Below are positions 23,800 through 61,873 of a stretch of 64,000 nt of DNA, piece after piece. Where the stretch lies: IMG/VR virus record IMGVR_UViG_3300024252_000004, positions 62,001 to 126,000 of that record; one strand, given 5' to 3'. The first letter of the stretch is position 1. Every line of letters begins with the position of its first letter. The position numbers and the translations under genes were made by a program. The notes under the pieces are model-generated. The model was given only the letters and a program-made list of their open reading frames with translations, was not told the origin of the DNA and did no database searches.

Positions 23800-24414
23800 A
23801 TGCATAAATGGATAAAGCAATGGACCGACATATTGGATTTTTGGGGACTTGAAAAAGAAGCTGAGGATTTGCTTGGCGACTCCGTATATGTTTATTCTGC
23901 AATACCAAATTGGGCAGAAGATTCTGTAAGGCAGAGCGGATTACTTAGCGGTAAATTAATTGCTAAGGACAAAGAGCTTTTGACTAAAATTCATCCAGAC
24001 GAAAAGGATAGAGAGCATTGGTTAAAAAGAATGGATGATCCATCTTTTGCAATAACTTATCAAGGGCCAAATGTTTTTTTCACTGTGCCTCCAAAAAGTT
24101 TATCTGAGCACCCTGTGAATAAGAATGATATGAAGATTTTGAAGATCAACCTGTCATCTTTGATTAATGATATTCCGGAGACAAAGCTTCATGGCCTTGA
24201 GCTTATACCTTATGAAACTGATGAAGAGTACGAATCGAACAAGAAAGATATCGATCGGCCAATAAGTTTTGAAGAGGCAGTAGAGTTATCCGAGGGAACA
24301 GAGGATGAGCAGTGGGCCGAGTATACTGGAGGGGGATTTTTTGCGGGAAATGTTCCGCATGCTGTAGTAATAACTCCTAATGGAAAAATCGATAGCAAAT
24401 ATATTGAGGTCTGA
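23800..24414 (+). CDS. Protein with conserved N-terminal leader; possible ADP-ribosyltransferase-like fold
   Basis: Leader MHKWIKQWTDILDFWGLEKEAEDL; YVYS...VRQSGLLS, VFFT and GKIDSKYI loosely resemble ART/DarT-like strands. Confidence 0.55.
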   Translation: MHKWIKQWTDILDFWGLEKEAEDLLGDSVYVYSAIPNWAEDSVRQSGLLSGKLIAKDKELLTKIHPDEKDREHWLKRMDDPSFAITYQGPNVFFTVPPKSLSEHPVNKNDMKILKINLSSLINDIPETKLHGLELIPYETDEEYESNKKDIDRPISFEEAVELSEGTEDEQWAEYTGGGFFAGNVPHAVVITPNGKIDSKYIEV

Positions 24415-25935
24415 ATGGGGTTAACTTTAAGCTCATACCAAAAGGCAATTATTGATGCCGTAAAGAATACTGATGATTGTCTTTCTATTCAGGCAGTAGC
24501 GGGATCTGGAAAGACCTATACTTTGTTAGAATGCATGAAGCATATTAATACATATAATGCTATCTTCATTGCATTCAATAAATCAATTGCGGACGAGCTT
24601 GCATCCAAGGTCCCAGCAAATTTTGCAGCAAGAACATTTCACTCAATTTGCTTTGAAGCATGGAGAAACTTCTGCGACGACAGAAGATTAAAAGTTGACG
24701 AAGACAAAGTCTGGTCAATCATTTGGAAACTCTTTGAAGAGGACGATGTAAAAACTTACGGGTATTTCATAAAGCAATTGGTCGGTCTTGCTAAGAATAT
24801 GGGGATTGGTACCGACTTGCTTCCTGATACATTAGATGCCTGGAACGAACTTGTTGACCGCCATGATCTCAGAATCCCCTCGGCAAGAGGCGATCAAACT
24901 GTTGGAATCCTATACGCACGGAAGGTGTTGGTAGAATCTTCAAAAGCACGATATGTAATCGATTTTGATGATATGCTATACCTTCCTTTGCTTTATGGGG
25001 CAACATTCAGAAGATTTGATATCATATTTATTGATGAGGCACAGGATTTGTCATCCATTCAACATGCCCTCCTTGAGTCTATGTTAAATGCAGATGGAAG
25101 ACTCATTGCTGTTGGTGATGAGCATCAGGCTATCTATGGATTTCGCGGTGCAGACTCCGAATCAATGGGAAAACTGGCAGATGATTTTGACTGTGTTAAA
25201 TTTCCTCTCAGCGTTACATATAGATGTGATAAAGCGATTGTAGAACACGCAAAGCAATGGGTCCCTCATATTGAGCCAAGGAAGTACGCTGGTGATGGCA
25301 TCGTAGAAGAGCTTGCAGAGTTCTCAGTTAATACTTTTGACGATGGCGACGTTGTCATCTGTAGAAACTCGGCACCATTAATCTCATTGGCATATGGGTT
25401 CATTAGGAGGGGGCGCAGGGTTAAGATGCTAGGGAGAGATATTGGCGAAGGGCTAATTCTCCTTATCGATAAGATGAGGACCGAGGACATTGATGAGCTT
25501 GAAGTTAAGCTTGAGAAATGGTATACGAGAGAAATGGAGAAGGCTCGTAAGAGAAGCAATGAGTCTCTTATGATTTCTGTTGAAGACAAGTATCAGTGTA
25601 TCAATATTTTCATTCAAAATTTAGATGAGGACTACAGGACAGTGGATGATCTTTGCTACGAGATTGCAAGGATCTTTAAGGAAACCGACGAGTCCATGTT
25701 AACCTTATGCACAGGTCACAAATCAAAGGGCCTTGAGTGGGAACATGTTTTCTGGCTTGAGAGGGGATTGATACCTTCTGCGTATGCTACCAAGGAGTGG
25801 ATGCTGCGCCAAGAGGATAATTTGGCATACGTCATCACGACGAGAGCCAAGCATCATTTGTCTTTCATTAGTCAGTCAGGATGGGTTCATGGCGAAAAAT
25901 ATATAGAAGAGAAAGATACTAATAATGAAGAATGA
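24415..25935 (+). CDS. UvrD/Rep-like SF1 helicase
   Basis: AVAGSGKT, AFNK, IDEAQD, VGDEHQAIYGFRGA, TYRC, HKSKGLEW, YVITTRAK. Confidence 0.9.
   Translation: MGLTLSSYQKAIIDAVKNTDDCLSIQAVAGSGKTYTLLECMKHINTYNAIFIAFNKSIADELASKVPANFAARTFHSICFEAWRNFCDDRRLKVDEDKVWSIIWKLFEEDDVKTYGYFIKQLVGLAKNMGIGTDLLPDTLDAWNELVDRHDLRIPSARGDQTVGILYARKVLVESSKARYVIDFDDMLYLPLLYGATFRRFDIIFIDEAQDLSSIQHALLESMLNADGRLIAVGDEHQAIYGFRGADSESMGKLADDFDCVKFPLSVTYRCDKAIVEHAKQWVPHIEPRKYAGDGIVEELAEFSVNTFDDGDVVICRNSAPLISLAYGFIRRGRRVKMLGRDIGEGLILLIDKMRTEDIDELEVKLEKWYTREMEKARKRSNESLMISVEDKYQCINIFIQNLDEDYRTVDDLCYEIARIFKETDESMLTLCTGHKSKGLEWEHVFWLERGLIPSAYATKEWMLRQEDNLAYVITTRAKHHLSFISQSGWVHGEKYIEEKDTNNEE
25917..25924 (+). promoter_or_regulatory. 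Candidate phage promoter motif TACTAATA
   Basis: 31 nt upstream of ATG 25956. Confidence 0.4.
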
Positions 25936-25955: not shown

Positions 25956-27530
25956 ATGATGAGTCAGTTATCCTCATTAATATCATTATTATCAAAACTT
26001 GGATTTAATAGCGAGTCTGATTATATCCGAAAGTTTTCTATAGACTATAGCCAAGTCAAAGAGAGGCTTTATTCTAAAAAATTTGAAAAAGCTATTAAGA
26101 AGTATTTTTTTGGAAATGATTTAAGAGTTATACCGGAAGACTTTTGGGATGAGAGTTCTCAAGAGTATTCTGATTTTATGAAAATTTATCAAGATATAGC
26201 AGGAGCTTTAGAGTGGGCAATACCTTCTGATATAACTGAGCAGGACAGGGCCCATGCTCTCAATTGGGTTATTACGGTTTTTGTTAGAGACCCAGACAAA
26301 CATAATCCCCAGATACTTGGAACAAGCATTTTAAGCGAAGTAAGAAGTTCTTTGGAAACTTTTTTTCAGATAAAAGAGCAAGGTTTTGAGGGAATACTTC
26401 AAGAGCCTGATATCTATCAGTACCAGGATTATATAAGTTTTGTTCGTGCCGTCGAAAATGTCTCATACACATATAAAAAGCTTCTTGAAGAAAGGATTTC
26501 GACAAAGGATGTTGCCGGCGGAATGAATAAGATTTTTGAAGATGAAGAATATGAGGTTTACATTCCGACGAATAAAGCAGCAGCATGTCACTTAGGAAAA
26601 GGGACGGAGTGGTGTACGGCGGCTCCTGGCTTGAGCTATTACGAAGATTATCATAGTCCTGATGACCCACTGATTATCTTCATGCATAAAGCTGACGAAA
26701 AGCAGAGGGTTCAGTTTAGCTTTGGTTCTAAACAGTTTATGGATGTAAATGATGAAGATATTCCTTACCAGCTATTAACGAAACTAACCAGCAAGCTTCT
26801 CAATGGAGAAACTGTACCTGATAATGTAAAGAAGCTTGCAAAAGAATATGATGACAGCCACCTTAAGACATCTCCAGAAAATCTTCAATTAAATTCGGAT
26901 GATGTAAGCAAAGGATTTGGTGATTCCGAATCAGCTCATGTTATGTCCGAGAATCTGCATCTTTATTACGAAGAAAGAGAGGATGACCCTTATGATTTAA
27001 GGGGCAAAGCATTTACGGAGGGGGTAAAGAAAAGGTTTGATAGTTTTCAACATGATACGGATAAGGATAGGTTTTTCCGAAATATTATACAAATAGTAAA
27101 TGAAAATATTTACAAAGGGGTTACGAAATCATGGGCCTCTCGCAAAGTATTGGGCGCCTTTATTCATGAGGCAGATTCCGATATAGATTTCACGATTTCT
27201 CAATATACAAATGACTCAGACATAGTCGAAACCTTAGTCGAAAGATATAAATCCGACGCCCTCTCTGAATCGGGGTATTTGGGGGATATATATTCTGAGC
27301 TTGTACATAGAAATACCTCTTGGTCACGAAAGCCTAGGATTCTGATGAAAATATTTGAAAATATTTTAAAAAGTAATGTTAAATGGCAAGGTGCGTGGAG
27401 CTTCATGTCAAGAGCTATTAAGAAAATAAGCAAAGATTATGTACAGAAGCATATTGAAAAGTTCAAGGCAGATCCTGATGTGAATCCTGAAAATCTCAAT
27501 ATTGCCATTGAAGGCATACAACTTTTGTAA
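25956..27530 (+). CDS. Large phage protein with conserved N-terminal leader and PcfJ-like central segment
   Basis: Leader MMSQLSSLISLLSKLGFNSESDYI; AACHLGKGTEWCTAA...YYEDY...PLIIF. Confidence 0.65.
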   Translation: MMSQLSSLISLLSKLGFNSESDYIRKFSIDYSQVKERLYSKKFEKAIKKYFFGNDLRVIPEDFWDESSQEYSDFMKIYQDIAGALEWAIPSDITEQDRAHALNWVITVFVRDPDKHNPQILGTSILSEVRSSLETFFQIKEQGFEGILQEPDIYQYQDYISFVRAVENVSYTYKKLLEERISTKDVAGGMNKIFEDEEYEVYIPTNKAAACHLGKGTEWCTAAPGLSYYEDYHSPDDPLIIFMHKADEKQRVQFSFGSKQFMDVNDEDIPYQLLTKLTSKLLNGETVPDNVKKLAKEYDDSHLKTSPENLQLNSDDVSKGFGDSESAHVMSENLHLYYEEREDDPYDLRGKAFTEGVKKRFDSFQHDTDKDRFFRNIIQIVNENIYKGVTKSWASRKVLGAFIHEADSDIDFTISQYTNDSDIVETLVERYKSDALSESGYLGDIYSELVHRNTSWSRKPRILMKIFENILKSNVKWQGAWSFMSRAIKKISKDYVQKHIEKFKADPDVNPENLNIAIEGIQLL

Positions 27531-28874: not shown

Positions 28875-29534
28875 ATGGAAATTGAAAGAGTGCCAATTAG
28901 AGTTATCGGAGCAAGAGATCCAAGGGAAAAAAAGGCTATCAACACGACCTCATCCTGCAAAGGTATAGGGCGTAGCTTCAGTCCGTTTATTCTTGGGCCA
29001 GTGAGCCTATATCCTGGGGCAGTTGCAGCTCAGGCATTAAACGTGGAGAATGCTTGGCAGTTCTCTAAGGTGTATAAATGTCATACAGATGACAATGGAG
29101 ATCCAACAGATGAATATTTTGAGTGGGCTAAAAAGGGCTGGCGTGACACTCGCGCTCATCGTTACCCTATGGGAAAAGGAGCCATCCCAGAATACTCGTG
29201 GTGGAACGGAAAGAAGCTTGGATACATTGAGGCCAGAAAGCGGATATATTTCCCCCTATATGCCGCAGCGGTAATAAGAACAAAAGCTTTCAACCTTCTA
29301 AAGGAAGGCTACAATGCTGGAAGACAGATTACCTTATGGGATTATGATGGTTACAACCATCTTGCCCTGGATATGACACTGAAAGATGTTATTAATAATC
29401 CGAGTAGACCTATGGGGCACGCCTTTGTGTTGGCGGCCTTAATTCAAGATGAATTCAAGAGGGTCTCTGATGGACAAACGAATAGCGAGCCTGTACAAAG
29501 CATTGAAGAAGATAGGTTTCAAGAAAGAAGCTGA
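28875..29534 (+). CDS. DUF6939-like protein (possibly NADAR-related)
   Basis: INTTS, FSPFILGP, VENAWQFSKVY, YIEARKRIY, HAFVLA. Confidence 0.62.
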   Translation: MEIERVPIRVIGARDPREKKAINTTSSCKGIGRSFSPFILGPVSLYPGAVAAQALNVENAWQFSKVYKCHTDDNGDPTDEYFEWAKKGWRDTRAHRYPMGKGAIPEYSWWNGKKLGYIEARKRIYFPLYAAAVIRTKAFNLLKEGYNAGRQITLWDYDGYNHLALDMTLKDVINNPSRPMGHAFVLAALIQDEFKRVSDGQTNSEPVQSIEEDRFQERS

Positions 29535-30285
29535 GCAGATTTTAAAGCTTAGCGAAGAAGATGACATCTTCACGATCTCCCCTGAGATGAAAAGATTAAG
29601 GGATTCTGGTAGATATGAGATAACCCGAGAAGATGATGACGATATAGAATCTTATAGGGTTTCTCCATCAGGTGTCTCTGGTTGGCCTGAGCAGTTTCAA
29701 TACATGAGACATCCGGACTCAGGCGAGATGATCCCGAGGCGCTCTTTTCGATACAACTCTGATATGTCCGAGGTATACGAAGAGGAAGACGAATTTGGTA
29801 TAACTTCAAGGACAAGGCTTAAGGACGGTTGGATCGAGAAGCTGCCCGAAGAAGGACCATTAATGTATAGGGGCATGTCTTATGAGGAATGGATGTTCAT
29901 TCAGGAGACAGGCAGGATAGAATCTCTTGGCGATTATAACCTTGGCGATGAGCAGATAGGATTGACTTATTTTTCAACGGAGCCAGACTCAGCAGCTCAT
30001 TATGCTCATGGGTTTGCACCATCCGAATACAAGGCAACGCCGGATAAACCAGCCTACGTCATTGGTGTACCAAGGCAAGAAGGTGAGCCCGTCGCAGGAG
30101 TGGGTGAACATGAGGTTGGAGTTCGTGGCCCCGTAGATGCATCCTTAATTGAAGAGGTATGGATTGGTATGCCATATTTTGCTACCACCAATGGAAGGGT
30201 AGACGTAATTGACGATTATCGAGGAAGACGATCCGGTTCTCGTTATCTACCATCAGTAAGCGTAGCATGGAAGAGGGTCAAATAA
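29470..30285 (+). CDS. Putative R-S-E clade ADP-ribosyltransferase with conserved N-terminal leader
   Basis: Leader MDKRIASLYKALKKIGFKKEAEQI; LMYRGMS (R), TYFST (S), GEHEVGV (ExE); start moved to ATG 29470. Confidence 0.7.
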   Translation: MDKRIASLYKALKKIGFKKEAEQILKLSEEDDIFTISPEMKRLRDSGRYEITREDDDDIESYRVSPSGVSGWPEQFQYMRHPDSGEMIPRRSFRYNSDMSEVYEEEDEFGITSRTRLKDGWIEKLPEEGPLMYRGMSYEEWMFIQETGRIESLGDYNLGDEQIGLTYFSTEPDSAAHYAHGFAPSEYKATPDKPAYVIGVPRQEGEPVAGVGEHEVGVRGPVDASLIEEVWIGMPYFATTNGRVDVIDDYRGRRSGSRYLPSVSVAWKRVK

Positions 30286-31912: not shown

Positions 31913-32907
31913 GACGATACCTTATCAAGACCTACTGCTACGAATCCGGACTTTTCTATTTGTCTAAAAATCTTGGAGATAAGCTACTGTCCGAAGGGCA
32001 CGTTGTAGTCTACGCTCCTAAGGCTAAGTATATTTTGGATGGAAGAGTCTATAGGAGAGTTTATCCCAGCCAGAAGAACCCAGATGAGTTTAAGCGCGAT
32101 ATCATCCTGCCATTCACGGCAAAGCGTCCTGTTAGCTACCTGATGCACAACGCAATCATTAAATATAAGATTGATACAGTCATTTCTTTTGAGACTCTTA
32201 TGGAGAAAGGGCAATGGGTGGCAAAGATTAAAGCACGAGACAAGGTTAAGATGATTGATGTTCCGATGGTTGAATGGGTAACTCCTTCATATGTCAAGAA
32301 CGGGTCTTACGATGTGTTCGATGAGATTTGGTGCCTAACTGATTTAACTAAGCAGGTATTTGACATGCCCAAAGCCAAACGGGTAAACTTTGACCTTGTA
32401 GACCGGAGCATTTTTTATCCGCCGGAATCCAAGCAGAACGATATAGTCACATTCTATCATGCAGGAAGTCTGAATCCAGACCATAGCACAAAGAATACGG
32501 ACTTGGTTGTGGCTGCTTTTAACAGGTTTCTTAGGGTAAATAATCCCAAGGCAAAGCTTATATTCACTGGCTCAACAGAGCGTATTGCTATTGATAACCA
32601 TACTAATATTTTACATATAGATAGGGTACTTAATAGGAACGAAATCGGTAAAATATATAGAGAAGCTGATGTCGTATTGGCACCTTCTCAAAAGGAGGGG
32701 CTGGGTTTGAGTTTATATGAGGCCCAAGCTTGCGGTTGCAAAATCATTACCACAGATGCTGCACCGATGAACGAAGTTGAAGCAGACTACCTATGCAGAG
32801 TAGATAAGCTAAAAAGGGACAGGGGATTTATCCCATTGGCCTTTGTTAACGAAGACGAAATATATAATCAAATCAAACAAGCGTATGAGGATATCATCAA
32901 TGGCTAA
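31909..32907 (+). CDS. GT4-like glycosyltransferase
   Basis: APSQKEGLGLSLYEAQACGCKIITTD. Confidence 0.78.
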   Translation: MRRYLIKTYCYESGLFYLSKNLGDKLLSEGHVVVYAPKAKYILDGRVYRRVYPSQKNPDEFKRDIILPFTAKRPVSYLMHNAIIKYKIDTVISFETLMEKGQWVAKIKARDKVKMIDVPMVEWVTPSYVKNGSYDVFDEIWCLTDLTKQVFDMPKAKRVNFDLVDRSIFYPPESKQNDIVTFYHAGSLNPDHSTKNTDLVVAAFNRFLRVNNPKAKLIFTGSTERIAIDNHTNILHIDRVLNRNEIGKIYREADVVLAPSQKEGLGLSLYEAQACGCKIITTDAAPMNEVEADYLCRVDKLKRDRGFIPLAFVNEDEIYNQIKQAYEDIING

Positions 32908-34342
32908 ATACAAAGTAAGCGTAAGTGAAAAAGACGCAGCAGTAAAACCAAAGTCCGAACAAGATGTCGCAAATGAAAACGCAGCACTTATGGACGCATT
33001 CGAAACACCGGCCGAAACACCGGCCGAAACACCGGCTGAGGTGGCACCAGAGCCGGAGCGTAAGCTCGATCCGGACATTCTGGCGAGGCTTAAGGCGAAG
33101 AAAACAAAAGTAAAAAAGGAGGAACCTGTGCCTGAATTAGTTGAAGAGCAAGAGGTTAGCATTAATATTGGAGTTGTAGGAGTTGGACAGGCTGGTTCCC
33201 GTCTTGCTGAGCAGTTTCACAAGTTAGGGTATGACGTAGGCGTCATCAATACATCCGCACAGGATCTTAGGTTCGTTGACGTGCTTCCAACCCAGAAGCT
33301 ATTGCTTGAGGGAAGCCTTGGTGGTACAGGTAAGGACCTCGATCTCGGCCGAGAAATCTTCTCTGATAACACAGAGGTATGTGCTCAGTTCATTGATAGG
33401 ATTGCAGAAGGAAATGACATGCTTTTCCTTGCAATGTCTGGTGGAGGAGGTACTGGCTCAAGCTCCGTTGATACAATGGTTGAGCTTTGCTATTCGACCG
33501 GCATGCCTCTTGGGCTTATCTTCGTGCTTCCAAAAGCGACTGAAGATGCTCAGTCTAAGAAGAACTCCATTGAGACTCTTGCAAAGCTTGCAAGAATGAC
33601 AGCAGACGATAAGGTGTCTTGTTTGGTCGTAGCAGATAACGCACGTATCGAGCAGATCTATGGCGGGCTTGGTCAGTCTCAGTTCTGGAGCACGGCTAAC
33701 AACGCAATCGTTGAGCCTATCCACTTGTTCAACAGCCTTACTTCTCAGGCATCCAAGTACACCTCTATGGACCCGTCCGACTTTGGTAAGGTAATTTCTT
33801 GCGGTGACTGCTCGGTGTATGGAATGGTTGAAGTTGAAGATTACATGGATGAGGTTGGCATTGCAGAAGCAATGATGGACTCTCTTAATAGCAACATGCT
33901 CGCAGAAGGATTCGATCTTGCACAGACCAGAACCGGTGGCGTTATCATCGTAGGTTCTGAGGAAGCATTAGAGAACCTTCCGGCAATCAACATTGATTAT
34001 GCGTTCCACGTTATCTCTGAGCAGACTGAGGATGCCAACATCTATCGAGGCGTTTATGCGCAGGAGGGTGTTGAGAATGTAAGGGTATATACTTGGTTTG
34101 CAGGACTTGGTCTTCCTCAGGATAGAATCGAGAATCTTAAGAAGGAAAGCAAGGACGCGACTGCTGCTGCGGCAGCTAAGGAAGGAAAGAGAGCTTCCGC
34201 AATGACTCTTGACCTTGAAGAGAACAAGGTATCTTCCGTTAAGGATGAGATTCACAGAAAGATTCGAGGCAAGAAGTCTGGCTTTGGTAAGCTACAAGGT
34301 GGCACAAGGCGTTCTTTGATTGACCGAAGAAGAAAGAGATAA
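32900..34342 (+). CDS. Tubulin/FtsZ-family GTPase (phage TubZ/PhuZ-like)
   Basis: VGVGQAGSRLA, INTS..D, GGTGKD, SGGGGTGSS tubulin signature, DPSDF; start moved to ATG 32900 behind GAGG. Confidence 0.9.
   Translation: MAKYKVSVSEKDAAVKPKSEQDVANENAALMDAFETPAETPAETPAEVAPEPERKLDPDILARLKAKKTKVKKEEPVPELVEEQEVSINIGVVGVGQAGSRLAEQFHKLGYDVGVINTSAQDLRFVDVLPTQKLLLEGSLGGTGKDLDLGREIFSDNTEVCAQFIDRIAEGNDMLFLAMSGGGGTGSSSVDTMVELCYSTGMPLGLIFVLPKATEDAQSKKNSIETLAKLARMTADDKVSCLVVADNARIEQIYGGLGQSQFWSTANNAIVEPIHLFNSLTSQASKYTSMDPSDFGKVISCGDCSVYGMVEVEDYMDEVGIAEAMMDSLNSNMLAEGFDLAQTRTGGVIIVGSEEALENLPAINIDYAFHVISEQTEDANIYRGVYAQEGVENVRVYTWFAGLGLPQDRIENLKKESKDATAAAAAKEGKRASAMTLDLEENKVSSVKDEIHRKIRGKKSGFGKLQGGTRRSLIDRRRKR
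33002..33037 (+). repeat. 12-bp tandem repeat x3 (GAAACACCGGCC, encodes ETPA) in the tubulin N-terminal extension
   Basis: Read directly; third copy ends GCT. Confidence 0.85.
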
Positions 34343-34352
34343 TCTTCAAATG

Positions 34353-34378
34353 AAAAGGCCCCTTTCGGGGCCTTTTTT
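34353..34378. terminator. Bidirectional intrinsic terminator between convergent genes
   Basis: AAAA-GGCCCC-TTTC-GGGGCC-TTTTTT. Confidence 0.85.
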
Positions 34379-57516: not shown

Positions 57517-57536
57517 TGTCGTAGGAGTCTGCGACA
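57517..57536 (+). promoter_or_regulatory. RNA hairpin occluding the lysozyme RBS and start
   Basis: TGTCGTAG-GAGT-CTGCGACA: 8-bp stem with one G-U pair; SD AGGAG in stem/loop; last base is the A of ATG. Confidence 0.55.
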
Positions 57537-58222
57537 TGAACCAGAAGATTCAAAAACTTGCAAAGCTATTAGCTCATCTTGGCCACTCGAAAGAGGCGGC
57601 TGAGGTGGGCTTCTTTGCGTTGGCACAAGAGGTTTATAAGATTCAGTCAGGTGATAATCCGTGGTCGTTGTCTGGTGGAGATGCAAAATATCATCAGATG
57701 ATTATGGACGCCAACCCTAAGGTTAATTGGAATAAGCTACAGATTGGTCAAGAGATCACTTTGCCAGCGAAGCCAAGCTATCCGAACAAGGGCATGCAGC
57801 CGTCCCGGTCAGCTTATGACATCATTAAGTCTCATGAAAAGCTGAAGCTTAGAGCTTACAATGACGGATTCGGTAATATGACTATTGGGTATGGTCATGT
57901 AATTAAGAAAGGGGAATCATTCTCTTCTATCTCAGAGCCTAAAGCGAAGCAGTTGCTTGTCAGCGATGCTACCGCTGCTGCCAAAGCTATTCAGCAGCTT
58001 GTCACTTCAAAGTTAAATCAGAATCAATTTGATGGACTTACCAGTTTGATCTTCAATATAGGAAGAGGGAACTTTGCAAGATCATCTATGCTTAAGAAGC
58101 TTAACTCTGGAGATTTTCAGGGAGCTGCAAGAGAGTTTGTATCTTTCAACAATGCTGGCGGAAAAGAGAATGCTCATTTGACAGGAAGAAGAAAAACCGA
58201 GGCCGCCCTATTTGTGAGCTAA
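57536..58222 (+). CDS. Leader + LysM + GH24 phage lysozyme
   Basis: Leader MNQKIQKLAKLLAHLGHSKEAAEV; YKIQSGDNPW...LQIGQEITLP (LysM); HEKLKLRAYNDGFGNMTIGYGH, NQNQFD, RRKTEAALF. Confidence 0.9.
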   Translation: MNQKIQKLAKLLAHLGHSKEAAEVGFFALAQEVYKIQSGDNPWSLSGGDAKYHQMIMDANPKVNWNKLQIGQEITLPAKPSYPNKGMQPSRSAYDIIKSHEKLKLRAYNDGFGNMTIGYGHVIKKGESFSSISEPKAKQLLVSDATAAAKAIQQLVTSKLNQNQFDGLTSLIFNIGRGNFARSSMLKKLNSGDFQGAAREFVSFNNAGGKENAHLTGRRKTEAALFVS

Positions 58223-60712: not shown

Positions 60713-61873
60713 ATGTCAGATTATAGCATTTATCCAGAAGCATTAGATGGGTACTCTCAGTTACCTCTTGCTGTAGACTTGGTCACGCCTGTTGAAGCAA
60801 AGAGTGTCAACAGATTGCGTAGTGCAATTGTGAACATTGAGGCTGAGCTTGGTGTTGAGCCAAGTGGAAATTTTGCAGACGTAGTTGGCAGACTTGAAAG
60901 CATCGAAGAAAGCATAGGTGTATTGGAGTCTGAAGAATCGGATGACTTAGTCGTCGGGGTCGATGTTCAGGCTTATGACGCCACACTTACCGGCATTGCA
61001 TCTTTGGGTACCGCAGCAGATAAAATGCTTTACACCACCGCAGCAGATACATGGGCTGAGACCTCAGTGACTTCAGCAGGAAGAGCAATCTTAGATGACA
61101 CAAATTCAGCCGCACAAAGAGTGACATTAGGTTTACAAATAGGCTCAGATGTTCAGGCTTATGATGCTACACTTACAAGTCTTACATCTTTGGGTACCGC
61201 AGCAGATAAAATGCTTTACACCACCGCAATAGATACATGGGCCGAAACCTCAGTGACCTCAGCAGGAAGGGCTATCTTGGACGATGCAAACTCTGCCGCT
61301 CAAAGAGTGACGTTGGGTTTGCAAATTGGTACAGATGTCCAGGCACAGAGTGTCAACCTTCAGGACGTTTCAGATTTAACTCTTGTTAAGGGACAAGTCT
61401 TGGTATCTGATGGCTCTGACTTATTGGCATTGTCAGTAGGTACTAATGGTCAAACACTAATTGCTGACAGTTCAGACTCTGAAGGTGTTGTATGGGGAAG
61501 AAACAGGACGTGGACTCATCATATGGATTGGCCAGAAGGAACTGCTCAAGCAAATAATACGATTAATTATTTTGGATGGGCACCATTTGGGTGCAGGCTT
61601 GATAAGCTAACAGTTGTTATGGTCAGCCTGAATACTCAAGGAACATTTACTCTTTCTTTAAATAATCAAGCTACAGTAGCCTCAATGTTATCTGGTTCAA
61701 GTTATAATATGAATGGGTTATCTGCGGCTACCGTAACATCGATTCCGTTGTCAGGAACTGATGCAAATCTTGCTCTCGCCGAAAATGGTGGATGGCAGTT
61801 AAGCCTTGTAAGCAATGATGCCAACTTCGATGGAAGCGGAATATACATCCAGTTACATTTTGAGGAGATCTGA
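60713..61873 (+). CDS. Tail-fibre-like virion protein with 62-aa internal repeats
   Basis: DVQAYDATLT...TSAGRAILDD...QRVTLGL repeats; GQVLVSDG/GQTLIADS; N-terminal module shared with 63686. Confidence 0.75.
   Translation: MSDYSIYPEALDGYSQLPLAVDLVTPVEAKSVNRLRSAIVNIEAELGVEPSGNFADVVGRLESIEESIGVLESEESDDLVVGVDVQAYDATLTGIASLGTAADKMLYTTAADTWAETSVTSAGRAILDDTNSAAQRVTLGLQIGSDVQAYDATLTSLTSLGTAADKMLYTTAIDTWAETSVTSAGRAILDDANSAAQRVTLGLQIGTDVQAQSVNLQDVSDLTLVKGQVLVSDGSDLLALSVGTNGQTLIADSSDSEGVVWGRNRTWTHHMDWPEGTAQANNTINYFGWAPFGCRLDKLTVVMVSLNTQGTFTLSLNNQATVASMLSGSSYNMNGLSAATVTSIPLSGTDANLALAENGGWQLSLVSNDANFDGSGIYIQLHFEEI
60962..61333 (+). repeat. 186-bp tandem repeat x2 (plus start of a third) inside the fibre gene
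   Basis: GATGT(T/C)CAGGC at 60962, 61148 and 61334. Confidence 0.88.

Follow-up and report, generated by a model that had tools for sequence, protein, structure and literature searches.

Phages use ADP-ribosyltransferases (ARTs) as some of their main tools for host takeover and for countering NAD+-based immunity. The ARTs of polyvalent proteins have been described as being of the His-Tyr-Asp (H-Y-D) type (Iyer et al. 2017), and polyvalent proteins, together with MuF fusions, are regarded as packaged in the capsid and injected (PMC5512222; PMC9503650). The internal proteins of phage T4 are a diverse set, and a capsid-targeting sequence (CTS) is the only part that they share (PMC3012670). Here, we analyzed a stretch of 64,000 nucleotides (nt), hereafter called the window, which corresponds to bases 62001 to 126000 of the 395,127-bp IMG/VR record IMGVR_UViG_3300024252_000004 (G000) from a huge uncultured phage. 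Our subject is one of its products, P0001, which belongs, as a stand-alone protein, to a large ART family that is unnamed and has no Pfam, NCBIfam, or PHROG model. P0001 starts with a leader shared with other proteins of G000. An initial annotation had assigned the motifs YRG, FST, and EHE, in that order, to an open reading frame (ORF) at positions 29470 to 30285 of the plus strand, and all three were located there.

The structure of P0001 was predicted with AlphaFold2 from an alignment of its relatives (mean predicted local distance difference test [pLDDT] score, 93.7; predicted template modeling score, 0.86). The model starts with helices at residues 3 to 14, 18 to 36, and 38 to 45, followed by a beta-rich part (residues 49 to 117) and a mixed alpha/beta domain (residues 128 to 271). 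When it was searched with VIA-align against 48,161 PDB representatives, nearly all of the 50 matches listed were ART-superfamily chains, covering the whole of residues 128 to 271. The highest Z-scores were those of KptA (9.6), TreX (7.3), EcPltA (7.2), DarT (7.1), LT-A (7.0), and pertussis S1 (6.9); CC0527 (6.9), Scabin (6.3), and Arr (6.1) came next, and then CARDS toxin, PARPs, and diphtheria toxin or diphtheria-type toxins. Foldseek gave probabilities of 0.99 to 1.0 for CC0527, TreX, and Tpt1 in the PDB, and the results of Foldseek searches of the PDB, AFDB clusters, and BFVD viral models concurred with those of the Atlas in pointing to DUF952, Scabin/pertussis-like proteins, Tox-ART-HYD1, Arr, DarT, and several Bacillus phage G proteins. 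Structure prediction and fold search thus agreed with the ART fold named in the initial annotation, and the C-terminal domain of P0001 very probably adopts this fold.

Residue conservation was examined in an alignment of 125 relatives or pieces of relatives, with about 40% identity. R134, G135, Y178, and E215 were invariant (125/125), and T166 was a Thr in 124 of the 125 sequences. Residue 169 was a Ser or a Thr in 115 (92%), and residue 170 was a Thr or a Ser in 79 (63%). S137, E140, G148, S152, G154, N157, Q162, G164, A175, F182, P184, P194, and G217 were near-invariant, as was T166. E213 was a Glu in just 62 of 122 relatives, about half of them; therefore, the conserved motif is x-x-E rather than E-x-E. 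Family-wide conservation extends to the Arg, the Ser/Thr, and the second Glu but not to the first Glu of EHE. Accordingly, the Arg-Ser-Glu (R-S-E) site claimed in the initial annotation stood for R134, S169 (as S/T), and E215, which were conserved and in the canonical order, but not for the first Glu, which varied. In the model, R134 lies at the end of a strand (131 to 136), S169 lies at the end of another (165 to 169) before a helix (172 to 181), and E215 starts a third (215 to 219). In the VIA-align results, the matched ranges start at model residue 131 for LT residue 4, at 129 for pertussis S1 residue 4, and at 129 for Scabin residue 72. Judging from these ranges, and provided that strand 1 has no gap, R134 would be the equivalent of the catalytic Arg of LT (R7), pertussis S1 (R9), and Scabin (R77). 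An ART fold with a preserved active site is well supported, and P0001 is probably an active NAD+-using enzyme, its catalysis being suggested by the fold and the conserved residues.

The extent of the family was determined by an exhaustive profile search, with clusters made at 50% identity. There were 549 clusters at an E value of ≤1e-3 and 61 at an E value of ≤1e-30, which gives a family of at least 549 clusters overall, and the matched proteins were often very long (up to 4825 amino acids [aa]). The matches came in tiers: about 36 of the best 150 relatives aligned from query residue 50 or earlier, many aligned from near residue 90, and the rest covered only residues ~127 to 270. Residues 46 to 120, which had been taken for an acidic linker in the initial annotation, form instead a structured beta subdomain (pLDDT, 89 to 98) that is conserved in the first of these tiers. 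In a word-indexed search with the single sequence, P0003 was the sole real homologue (52% identity), with the same leader and motifs, the other match being P0001's own copy; identical copies of P0001 are found in G000 and in the IMG/VR contig L014. The same type of search with a profile found 13 proteins, every one named at most "hypothetical protein." Among cultured phages, tblastn found three records, of one cyanophage type only, in which the domain lies within a 2772-aa ORF annotated as a "large polyvalent protein." Pfam (at an E value of ≤1), NCBIfam, and PHROGs gave zero matches for P0001, and sequence searches of the PDB with P0001 alone or with the family profile gave chance-level matches only.

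Kinship with T4 Alt, ModA, and ModB, also proposed initially, did not hold. P0001 had no match to PF03496, to which T4 Alt (from AF158101), used as a positive comparison, matched at an E value of 5.8e-36. The hhalign probability between the family profile and Alt was 0.1%, and none of the 50 VIA-align matches listed was a VIP2, C3, or Alt-type structure. Membership of P0001 in the Alt family is refuted; its structural neighbors of the R-S-E type are those of the cholera/pertussis/Scabin group. ART-PolyVal (PF18760) had no match in P0001 or in G000. The family profile aligned weakly with that of ART-PolyVal (hhalign E value, 0.0012; probability, 20%), with YRG over YHG and FST over F-T. P0001 as an ART-PolyVal was rejected because PF18760 was silent and because, in the long relatives, ART-PolyVal occupies other positions of the same polypeptide. 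The description that fits P0001 best is that of a tagged protein that stands alone within a new R-S/T-E ART family of the polyvalent-protein type. What is new is the Arg-Ser-Glu-type site, whereas the polyvalent-protein ARTs described so far are H-Y-D. If the family were named, hundreds of large phage proteins would gain an annotation, and P0001, with 271 aa, would be a tractable representative for biochemistry.

The domain company of the family was examined by scanning 39 long members with Pfam. The domains found together with the ART domain were ART-PolyVal (nine cases), MuF (four), Acb1, DUF7178, and NUDIX (three each), and LPD23 (two), along with single cases of a portal protein, Zeta toxin, topoisomerase IB, PBECR5, ADPrib_exo_Tox, ParB, and others. 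At 35 IMG/VR loci, most of the ORFs bearing the ART domain were longer than 500 aa, with a maximum of 4235 aa. P0001 itself has one catalytic domain, whereas polyvalent proteins as defined by Iyer et al. (2017) combine 2 to 15 effector domains in one polypeptide, as the relatives of P0001 do. This company is the best argument that P0001 might be delivered into the host, a plausible but indirect one. The closest orthologues, P0003 (residues 285 to 375, after the ART domain) and P0004 (residues 38 to 130, before it), have an extra domain starting with T-L-Y-H-G-[GT], a His-type signature reminiscent of ART-PolyVal; they look like mini-polyvalent proteins with two ART-like modules.

A model of the leader was seeded with four N termini of the window and searched against G000. 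Six more copies were found, and all ten were located at the first Met of an ORF, with the consensus M-x-x-x-h-x-x-L-x-x-x-L-x-x-h-G-[FL]-x-K-E-A-x-x-h. When each copy was left out in turn, the model made from the other nine leaders recovered that of P0001 at an E value of 1.1e-7, as the best nontraining match in the genome. Five others were recovered at an E value of ≤0.012 (the best nontraining match in each case), three were marginal (E values of 0.3 to 0.5), and the protein encoded from position 23800 had an E value of 16. The best match in the control with reversed sequences had an E value of 0.36. The shared leader reported initially was therefore confirmed for P0001 and, at an E value of ≤0.012, for six of the ten copies in all. 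The ten tagged products of G000 are the ART, a 524-aa orphan, a 204-aa protein, a LysM-lysozyme, a kinase-like protein, two proteins with long hydrophobic stretches, and three acidic orphans. The orthologues P0003, P0004, and P0005 also carry the leader. In the complete 335-kb phage G001, the tag is found on at least seven ORFs, including those of the 674-aa ART relative P0004 and of kinase-like and membrane-like proteins similar in sequence to their counterparts in G000.

Variants of the leader (K-L-D-x-x-G-[LF]-x-K-E-A-D) are found at the N termini of ORFs of other viral contigs. In the lineage of contigs L009 and L011, the ART orthologue and an unrelated upstream neighbor share a different hairpin leader, x-K-L-x-x-L-T-N-x-L-x-x-Y-P-x-E-L. 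Therefore, the tag covaries within a genome, being closer to those of its genome-mates than to those of its orthologues. At L009:9469-10807 and L011:9444-10804, this second leader continues with K-L-A-A, and genes nearby carry a tag of the G-L-x-K-E-A-D type. An exact degenerate DNA pattern for one flavor of the tag was found at 5 IMG/VR loci, a pattern too strict to serve as a measure of prevalence. The leader itself had chance-level matches only in Pfam, and in a Pfam scan of ten further tagged products of other phages there was one weak kinase match and nothing else. A SAP/HeH-like DNA-binding motif was considered for the leader because of a resemblance and was dropped, as no support for it was found. 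The tag is probably a shared sorting or docking module. By analogy with T4, it might direct packaging into the virion and injection, a possibility that we regard as somewhat doubtful.

Atlas searches with the 204-aa protein, by sequence features and by structure, led to DarT and PARP clusters (TM score, 0.50 to 0.56). The product of positions 57536 to 58222 could be a virion-associated wall hydrolase or an endolysin. The kinase-like tagged proteins of G000 (198701 to 199852) and G001 (L050:472-1593, minus strand) are alike, with an acidic stretch after the tag in each. A tagged hydrophobic protein comparable to the two of G000 is encoded at the G001 locus L055, also without a family match, and all three are possibly membrane active.

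The presence of tagged genes was then compared among related phages. L012, a 405,912-bp relative, is syntenic with the window from the thioredoxin gene to the tubulin gene, and its DUF6939 protein, from the gene upstream of the ART gene in the window, is 81% identical to the window copy, with the same stop. In L012, the whole sequence from the DUF6939 stop up to the ribosome-binding site of the glycosyltransferase gene is absent, and hence the body of the ART gene is gone; a remnant of its start, ATG AGG AAA AAA GTA GTT TGA, runs into a stop at codon 7. In G001-type phages, an ART relative is found at the same place, directly upstream of a glycosyltransferase-tubulin-helicase block. Because the leader start lies in shared DNA, the remnant stops at codon 7, and the G001 orthologue is at the same place, the simplest history would be that an ancestral ART gene at this site was lost by L012, and for these same reasons a gain of the gene by insertion in the G000 lineage was rejected. 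L012 is also without the gene of the 524-aa tagged protein, its helicase gene being followed directly by the nucleoside-hydrolase gene, and the slot of the 23800 gene is occupied by an unrelated, untagged ART-PolyVal gene (L012:4764-5309). The tagged genes thus behave as exchangeable accessory genes, like those of the T4 internal proteins (PMC3012670). The UvrD-type helicase is 506 aa long in the window (24415 to 25935, plus strand) and 849 aa long in L012 (5310 to 7859), where it carries an intein/homing-endonuclease insertion (Hom_end_hint).

The features of the locus are collected in the table below. The start of the ART gene was placed at ATG 29470, and not at ATG 29449 or at TTG 29503 (the latter from the public gene call, P0002), because AAGAGGG is properly spaced from the former alone; neither of the other two has a Shine-Dalgarno-like site. 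With this start, the N terminus can be aligned with those of other proteins of G000.

Features of the P0001 locus and of other leader-tagged genes of G000 (window positions unless a G000 coordinate is given)
Feature	Position	Strand	Remarks
Coding sequence of ART-fold protein P0001	29470..30285	+	Intact ORF, 271 aa plus stop; three-part leader-tagged product
Shine-Dalgarno-like AAGAGGG	29457-29463	+	6 nt ahead of ATG 29470
N-terminal two-helix leader (aa 1-36)	29470..29577	+	Helices 3-14 and 18-36, G-F turn 16-17; from AlphaFold2 model and leader hidden Markov model
Beta-rich subdomain (aa 46-120)	29605..29829	+	Opens with SGRY motif; pLDDT 89-98, strands 49-117
ART-fold catalytic domain (aa 128-271)	29851..30282	+	From structural matches
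YRG motif	Residues 133-135; R134 codon 29869-29871	+	Candidate NAD-binding Arg, strand 1
FST motif	Residues 168-170, codons 29971-29979; S169-T170 codons 29974-29979	+	End of strand 2, before helix 172-181
EHE motif	Residues 213-215, codons 30106-30114	+	E213 codon 30106-30108; E215 codon 30112-30114, candidate catalytic Glu
Leader-like 204-aa protein	23800..24414	+	Possible second ART fold (DarT/PARP-like); core G-L-E-K-E-A-E; leave-one-out E = 16
Leader-tagged 524-aa protein	25956..27530	+	Leave-one-out E = 0.012; phrog_17056, unknown function
Upstream DUF6939 gene	28875..29534	+	NADAR-like fold; PF22075 E = 2.1e-6
TubZ/PhuZ-like tubulin gene	32843-34342	+	Long Pro/Glu/Ala-rich N-terminal extension
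Terminator-like hairpin	34352-34377		Perfect 11-bp GC-rich hairpin, T-runs on both sides; ends long plus-strand array
Leader-like N terminus, then LysM and phage lysozyme	57536..58222	+	PF00959 1e-34, LysM 4.5e-5; leader leave-one-out E = 0.34
Leader-tagged kinase-like protein (L003)	G000:C1:198701-199852		Weak Pkinase and phage-kinase PHROG matches
Leader-tagged proteins with long hydrophobic Gly/Ala-rich stretches	G000:C1:329412-330335 (L002), 222745-223347 (L007)		No family matches

The DUF6939 gene overlaps the ART gene. The AlphaFold2 model of its product had a pLDDT of 91, with the last 24 residues (196 to 219) below 50; these are not conserved and are probably disordered. The overlap with the first 65 nt of the ART gene corresponds to residues 199 to 219 and lies inside this low-confidence segment. 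The best fold matches in the PDB were the DarT1-associated NADAR of Geobacter lovleyi (8bat; probability, 0.99) and Escherichia coli YbiA. DUF6939 had at least 2132 matches in many phages and bacteria, with 50 to 81% identity to the window copy among the matches listed. A scan for promoters and terminators found no enrichment over shuffled sequences and is uninformative on the timing of expression. Farther upstream (about 150 to 22750, plus strand), reading of the translations revealed a long run of sugar-nucleotide/glycosyltransferase-like genes; in relatives, the genes syntenic with this run match UDP-glucose dehydrogenase, epimerase/dehydratase, and Glyco_transf_29.

We propose that P0001 is a tagged three-part ART-fold effector whose tag is a common address label, an explanation to which, as a whole, we give slightly less than an even chance. 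Most likely, P0001 would bind NAD+ and transfer ADP-ribose to a host macromolecule. The polyvalent effector would appear here in an unbundled form, with one tag common to the ART, the kinase-like protein, the LysM-lysozyme, the membrane-like proteins, and several orphans. By analogy with the CTS of the T4 internal proteins, this label would most likely serve for incorporation into the particle and for codelivery. The proposal starts from what the data show, namely, an ART fold, a conserved triad, a family with its domain company, a shared tag, and the presence or absence of the ART gene among relatives; catalysis, the target, packaging, ejection, and any cleavage of the tag are inferred. More broadly, some huge phages may have dismantled the polyvalent effector into a changing set of separate effectors, each with a hairpin address tag of ~30 residues that loads it into the particle for coinjection, the tag coevolving with its receptor in each lineage. 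We consider this generalization rather unlikely; if it is true, one could tell directly from the sequence of an uncultured huge phage which proteins it ejects.

Several observations weigh against the proposed delivery of tagged effectors. The ART gene lies in a long codirectional array, together with genes for a NADAR-like protein, a nucleoside hydrolase, a helicase, glycosyltransferases, and a tubulin. No head or baseplate genes are found beside it, unlike the case of T4 alt, and the closest recognizable virion gene in the window is a tail-fiber gene at position 60713. MuF (PF04233), T4 prohead protease (PF03420), and gp23 (PF07068) had zero matches in G000, where the head module was not located. 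Of the ten tags, four score weakly in the leave-one-out test, and in one relative (P0010), the tag is found inside the protein. No conserved cleavage motif was seen after the tag; only about half of the tags have an A-x-E where helix 2 starts, and that of P0001 does not. The structural Z-scores are middling (6 to 9.6), and the case for the fold is made by the near-uniformity of the matches, no single one being strong. Many of these points would suit an active ART that is not packaged and is used in the cell that made it, as T4 ModA and ModB are, with the hairpin docking it to a phage-made hub, filament, or compartment or acting as an oligomerization or stability module. The neighborhood is metabolic and replicative (nucleoside hydrolase, NADAR-like protein, helicase, glycosyltransferases, and TubZ/PhuZ-like tubulin), with virion genes not nearby and with neither promoter nor terminator separating the ART gene from the array, and this alternative would also accommodate the internal tag of P0010, the lack of a conserved cleavage site after the tag, and the failure to find MuF or a T4-type protease in G000. 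However, the great majority of family members are parts of polyvalent proteins, some of them fused to MuF or portal proteins; the set of an ART, a kinase-like protein, a LysM-lysozyme, and membrane-like proteins resembles ejected repertoires, and a cytoplasmic tag on a wall hydrolase would be hard to explain. The fast turnover of tagged genes between close relatives also parallels that of the T4 internal proteins. Overall, we consider use in the producing cell unlikely, though it deserves to be kept in mind.

The DUF6939 neighbor suggests another arrangement, in which the ART and the NADAR-like protein would form a writer-eraser or toxin-immunity pair, with ADP-ribosylation of bases (as by DarT1, Scabin, and pierisin on guanine) being reversed on phage or self molecules. 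The fold match to the DarT1-associated NADAR and the 65-nt overlap of the two genes are consistent with such a pair, DNA- or RNA-directed ARTs (DarT, Scabin, and KptA) are among the closest structural matches of P0001, and NADAR replaces Macro domains in DarT-DarG-like systems (PMC9503650). Yet DUF6939 is a very large family, highly conserved among the matches listed, that persists in L012 after the loss of the ART gene, it was not found beside ART homologues at any other locus examined, the orthologue in G001 has different upstream neighbors, and the overlap is confined to the low-confidence, nonconserved tail. Because the adjacency is not conserved, a dedicated pair was rejected, and we regard this arrangement as improbable. 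About equally improbable is an ART-fold enzyme other than a macromolecule transferase, namely, an NAD+ glycohydrolase, an Arr-like small-molecule modifier, or a KptA-like RNA 2'-phosphotransferase. KptA was the best single structural match, and Arr, CC0527/DUF952, and RES-type toxin chains were matched too. In Arg-specific toxins, the first Glu of E-x-E helps target recognition, and this Glu is not conserved in the P0001 family. However, the matches to KptA, Arr, and DUF952 span the core only (78 to 106 residues), and these proteins have His-type or other active sites, whereas the P0001 family has an invariant strand-1 Arg-Gly plus the S/T and the Glu, as in transferase toxins. The family-specific beta subdomain also suggests recognition of a macromolecule, and the polyvalent company consists of macromolecule modifiers (PMC5512222). 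It is very improbable that the domain is a catalytically dead ART-like one with a binding or structural role. Degenerate ART-like domains do occur in some phages, but here 125 diverged relatives show little or no variation at the triad positions and at ~15 surrounding residues, which is the pattern of a preserved active site.

The proposed tagged effector can be compared with several known systems. P0001 and T4 Alt are both enzymes of the ART superfamily that are encoded by phages and have a site of the R-S-E type, and the proposed role of P0001, modification of host molecules on entry, would match that of Alt. However, Alt has 682 aa, its gene adjoins baseplate genes (gp54 and gp48), and its packaging has been demonstrated, whereas P0001 has 271 aa and no such neighbors and its packaging is putative. 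ART-PolyVal, of the Tox-ART-HYD2 clade (H-Y-D) and known from the polyvalent proteins of phages and plasmids, occupies the same niche and is often found side by side with the P0001-type domain in polyvalent proteins, but the P0001 family has an Arg in place of the His on strand 1 and a Glu in place of the Asp. The R-S-E toxins (LT-A, pertussis S1, PltA, Scabin, CARDS toxin, and the Rhs toxins TreX and TreTu) share with P0001 the ART core (Z-scores of 5.6 to 7.3 over 89 to 118 residues), with an Arg at the end of strand 1, a strand-2 S/T followed by a helix, and a Glu that starts a later strand, the order being the same and the spacing similar. They differ in that P0001 has no detectable sequence similarity to them in a PDB profile search or in Pfam, the position of the first Glu/Gln in the x-E motif varies within its family, and this family has a long conserved loop of its own, S152-G154-x-Y-N157-L-G...Q162-x-G164, and an N-terminal beta subdomain; moreover, they are secreted bacterial toxins, whereas P0001 is found in a phage context. 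As for the tag, the CTS of T4 is roughly 10 residues long, and the tag of G000 is about three times longer, with a predicted helix-turn-helix hairpin and a G-[FL]-x-K-E-A core. It also differs in that its role in encapsidation is putative, in having an internal copy in P0010, and in coming with no protease or protease site that could be found. In both phages, a short N-terminal peptide is common to unrelated, fast-turning-over proteins of one phage (PMC3012670), and the length of the G000 tag is in the range of that of the propeptides of gp45 and gp225 of phage SPN3US (20 to 24 residues) (PMC10052503). Should the tag turn out to label proteins for packaging or ejection, the delivered proteins of huge phages beyond culture could be recognized from their sequences, and the tag might also be a handle for loading foreign proteins into such capsids, as the targeting sequence of T4 has been.

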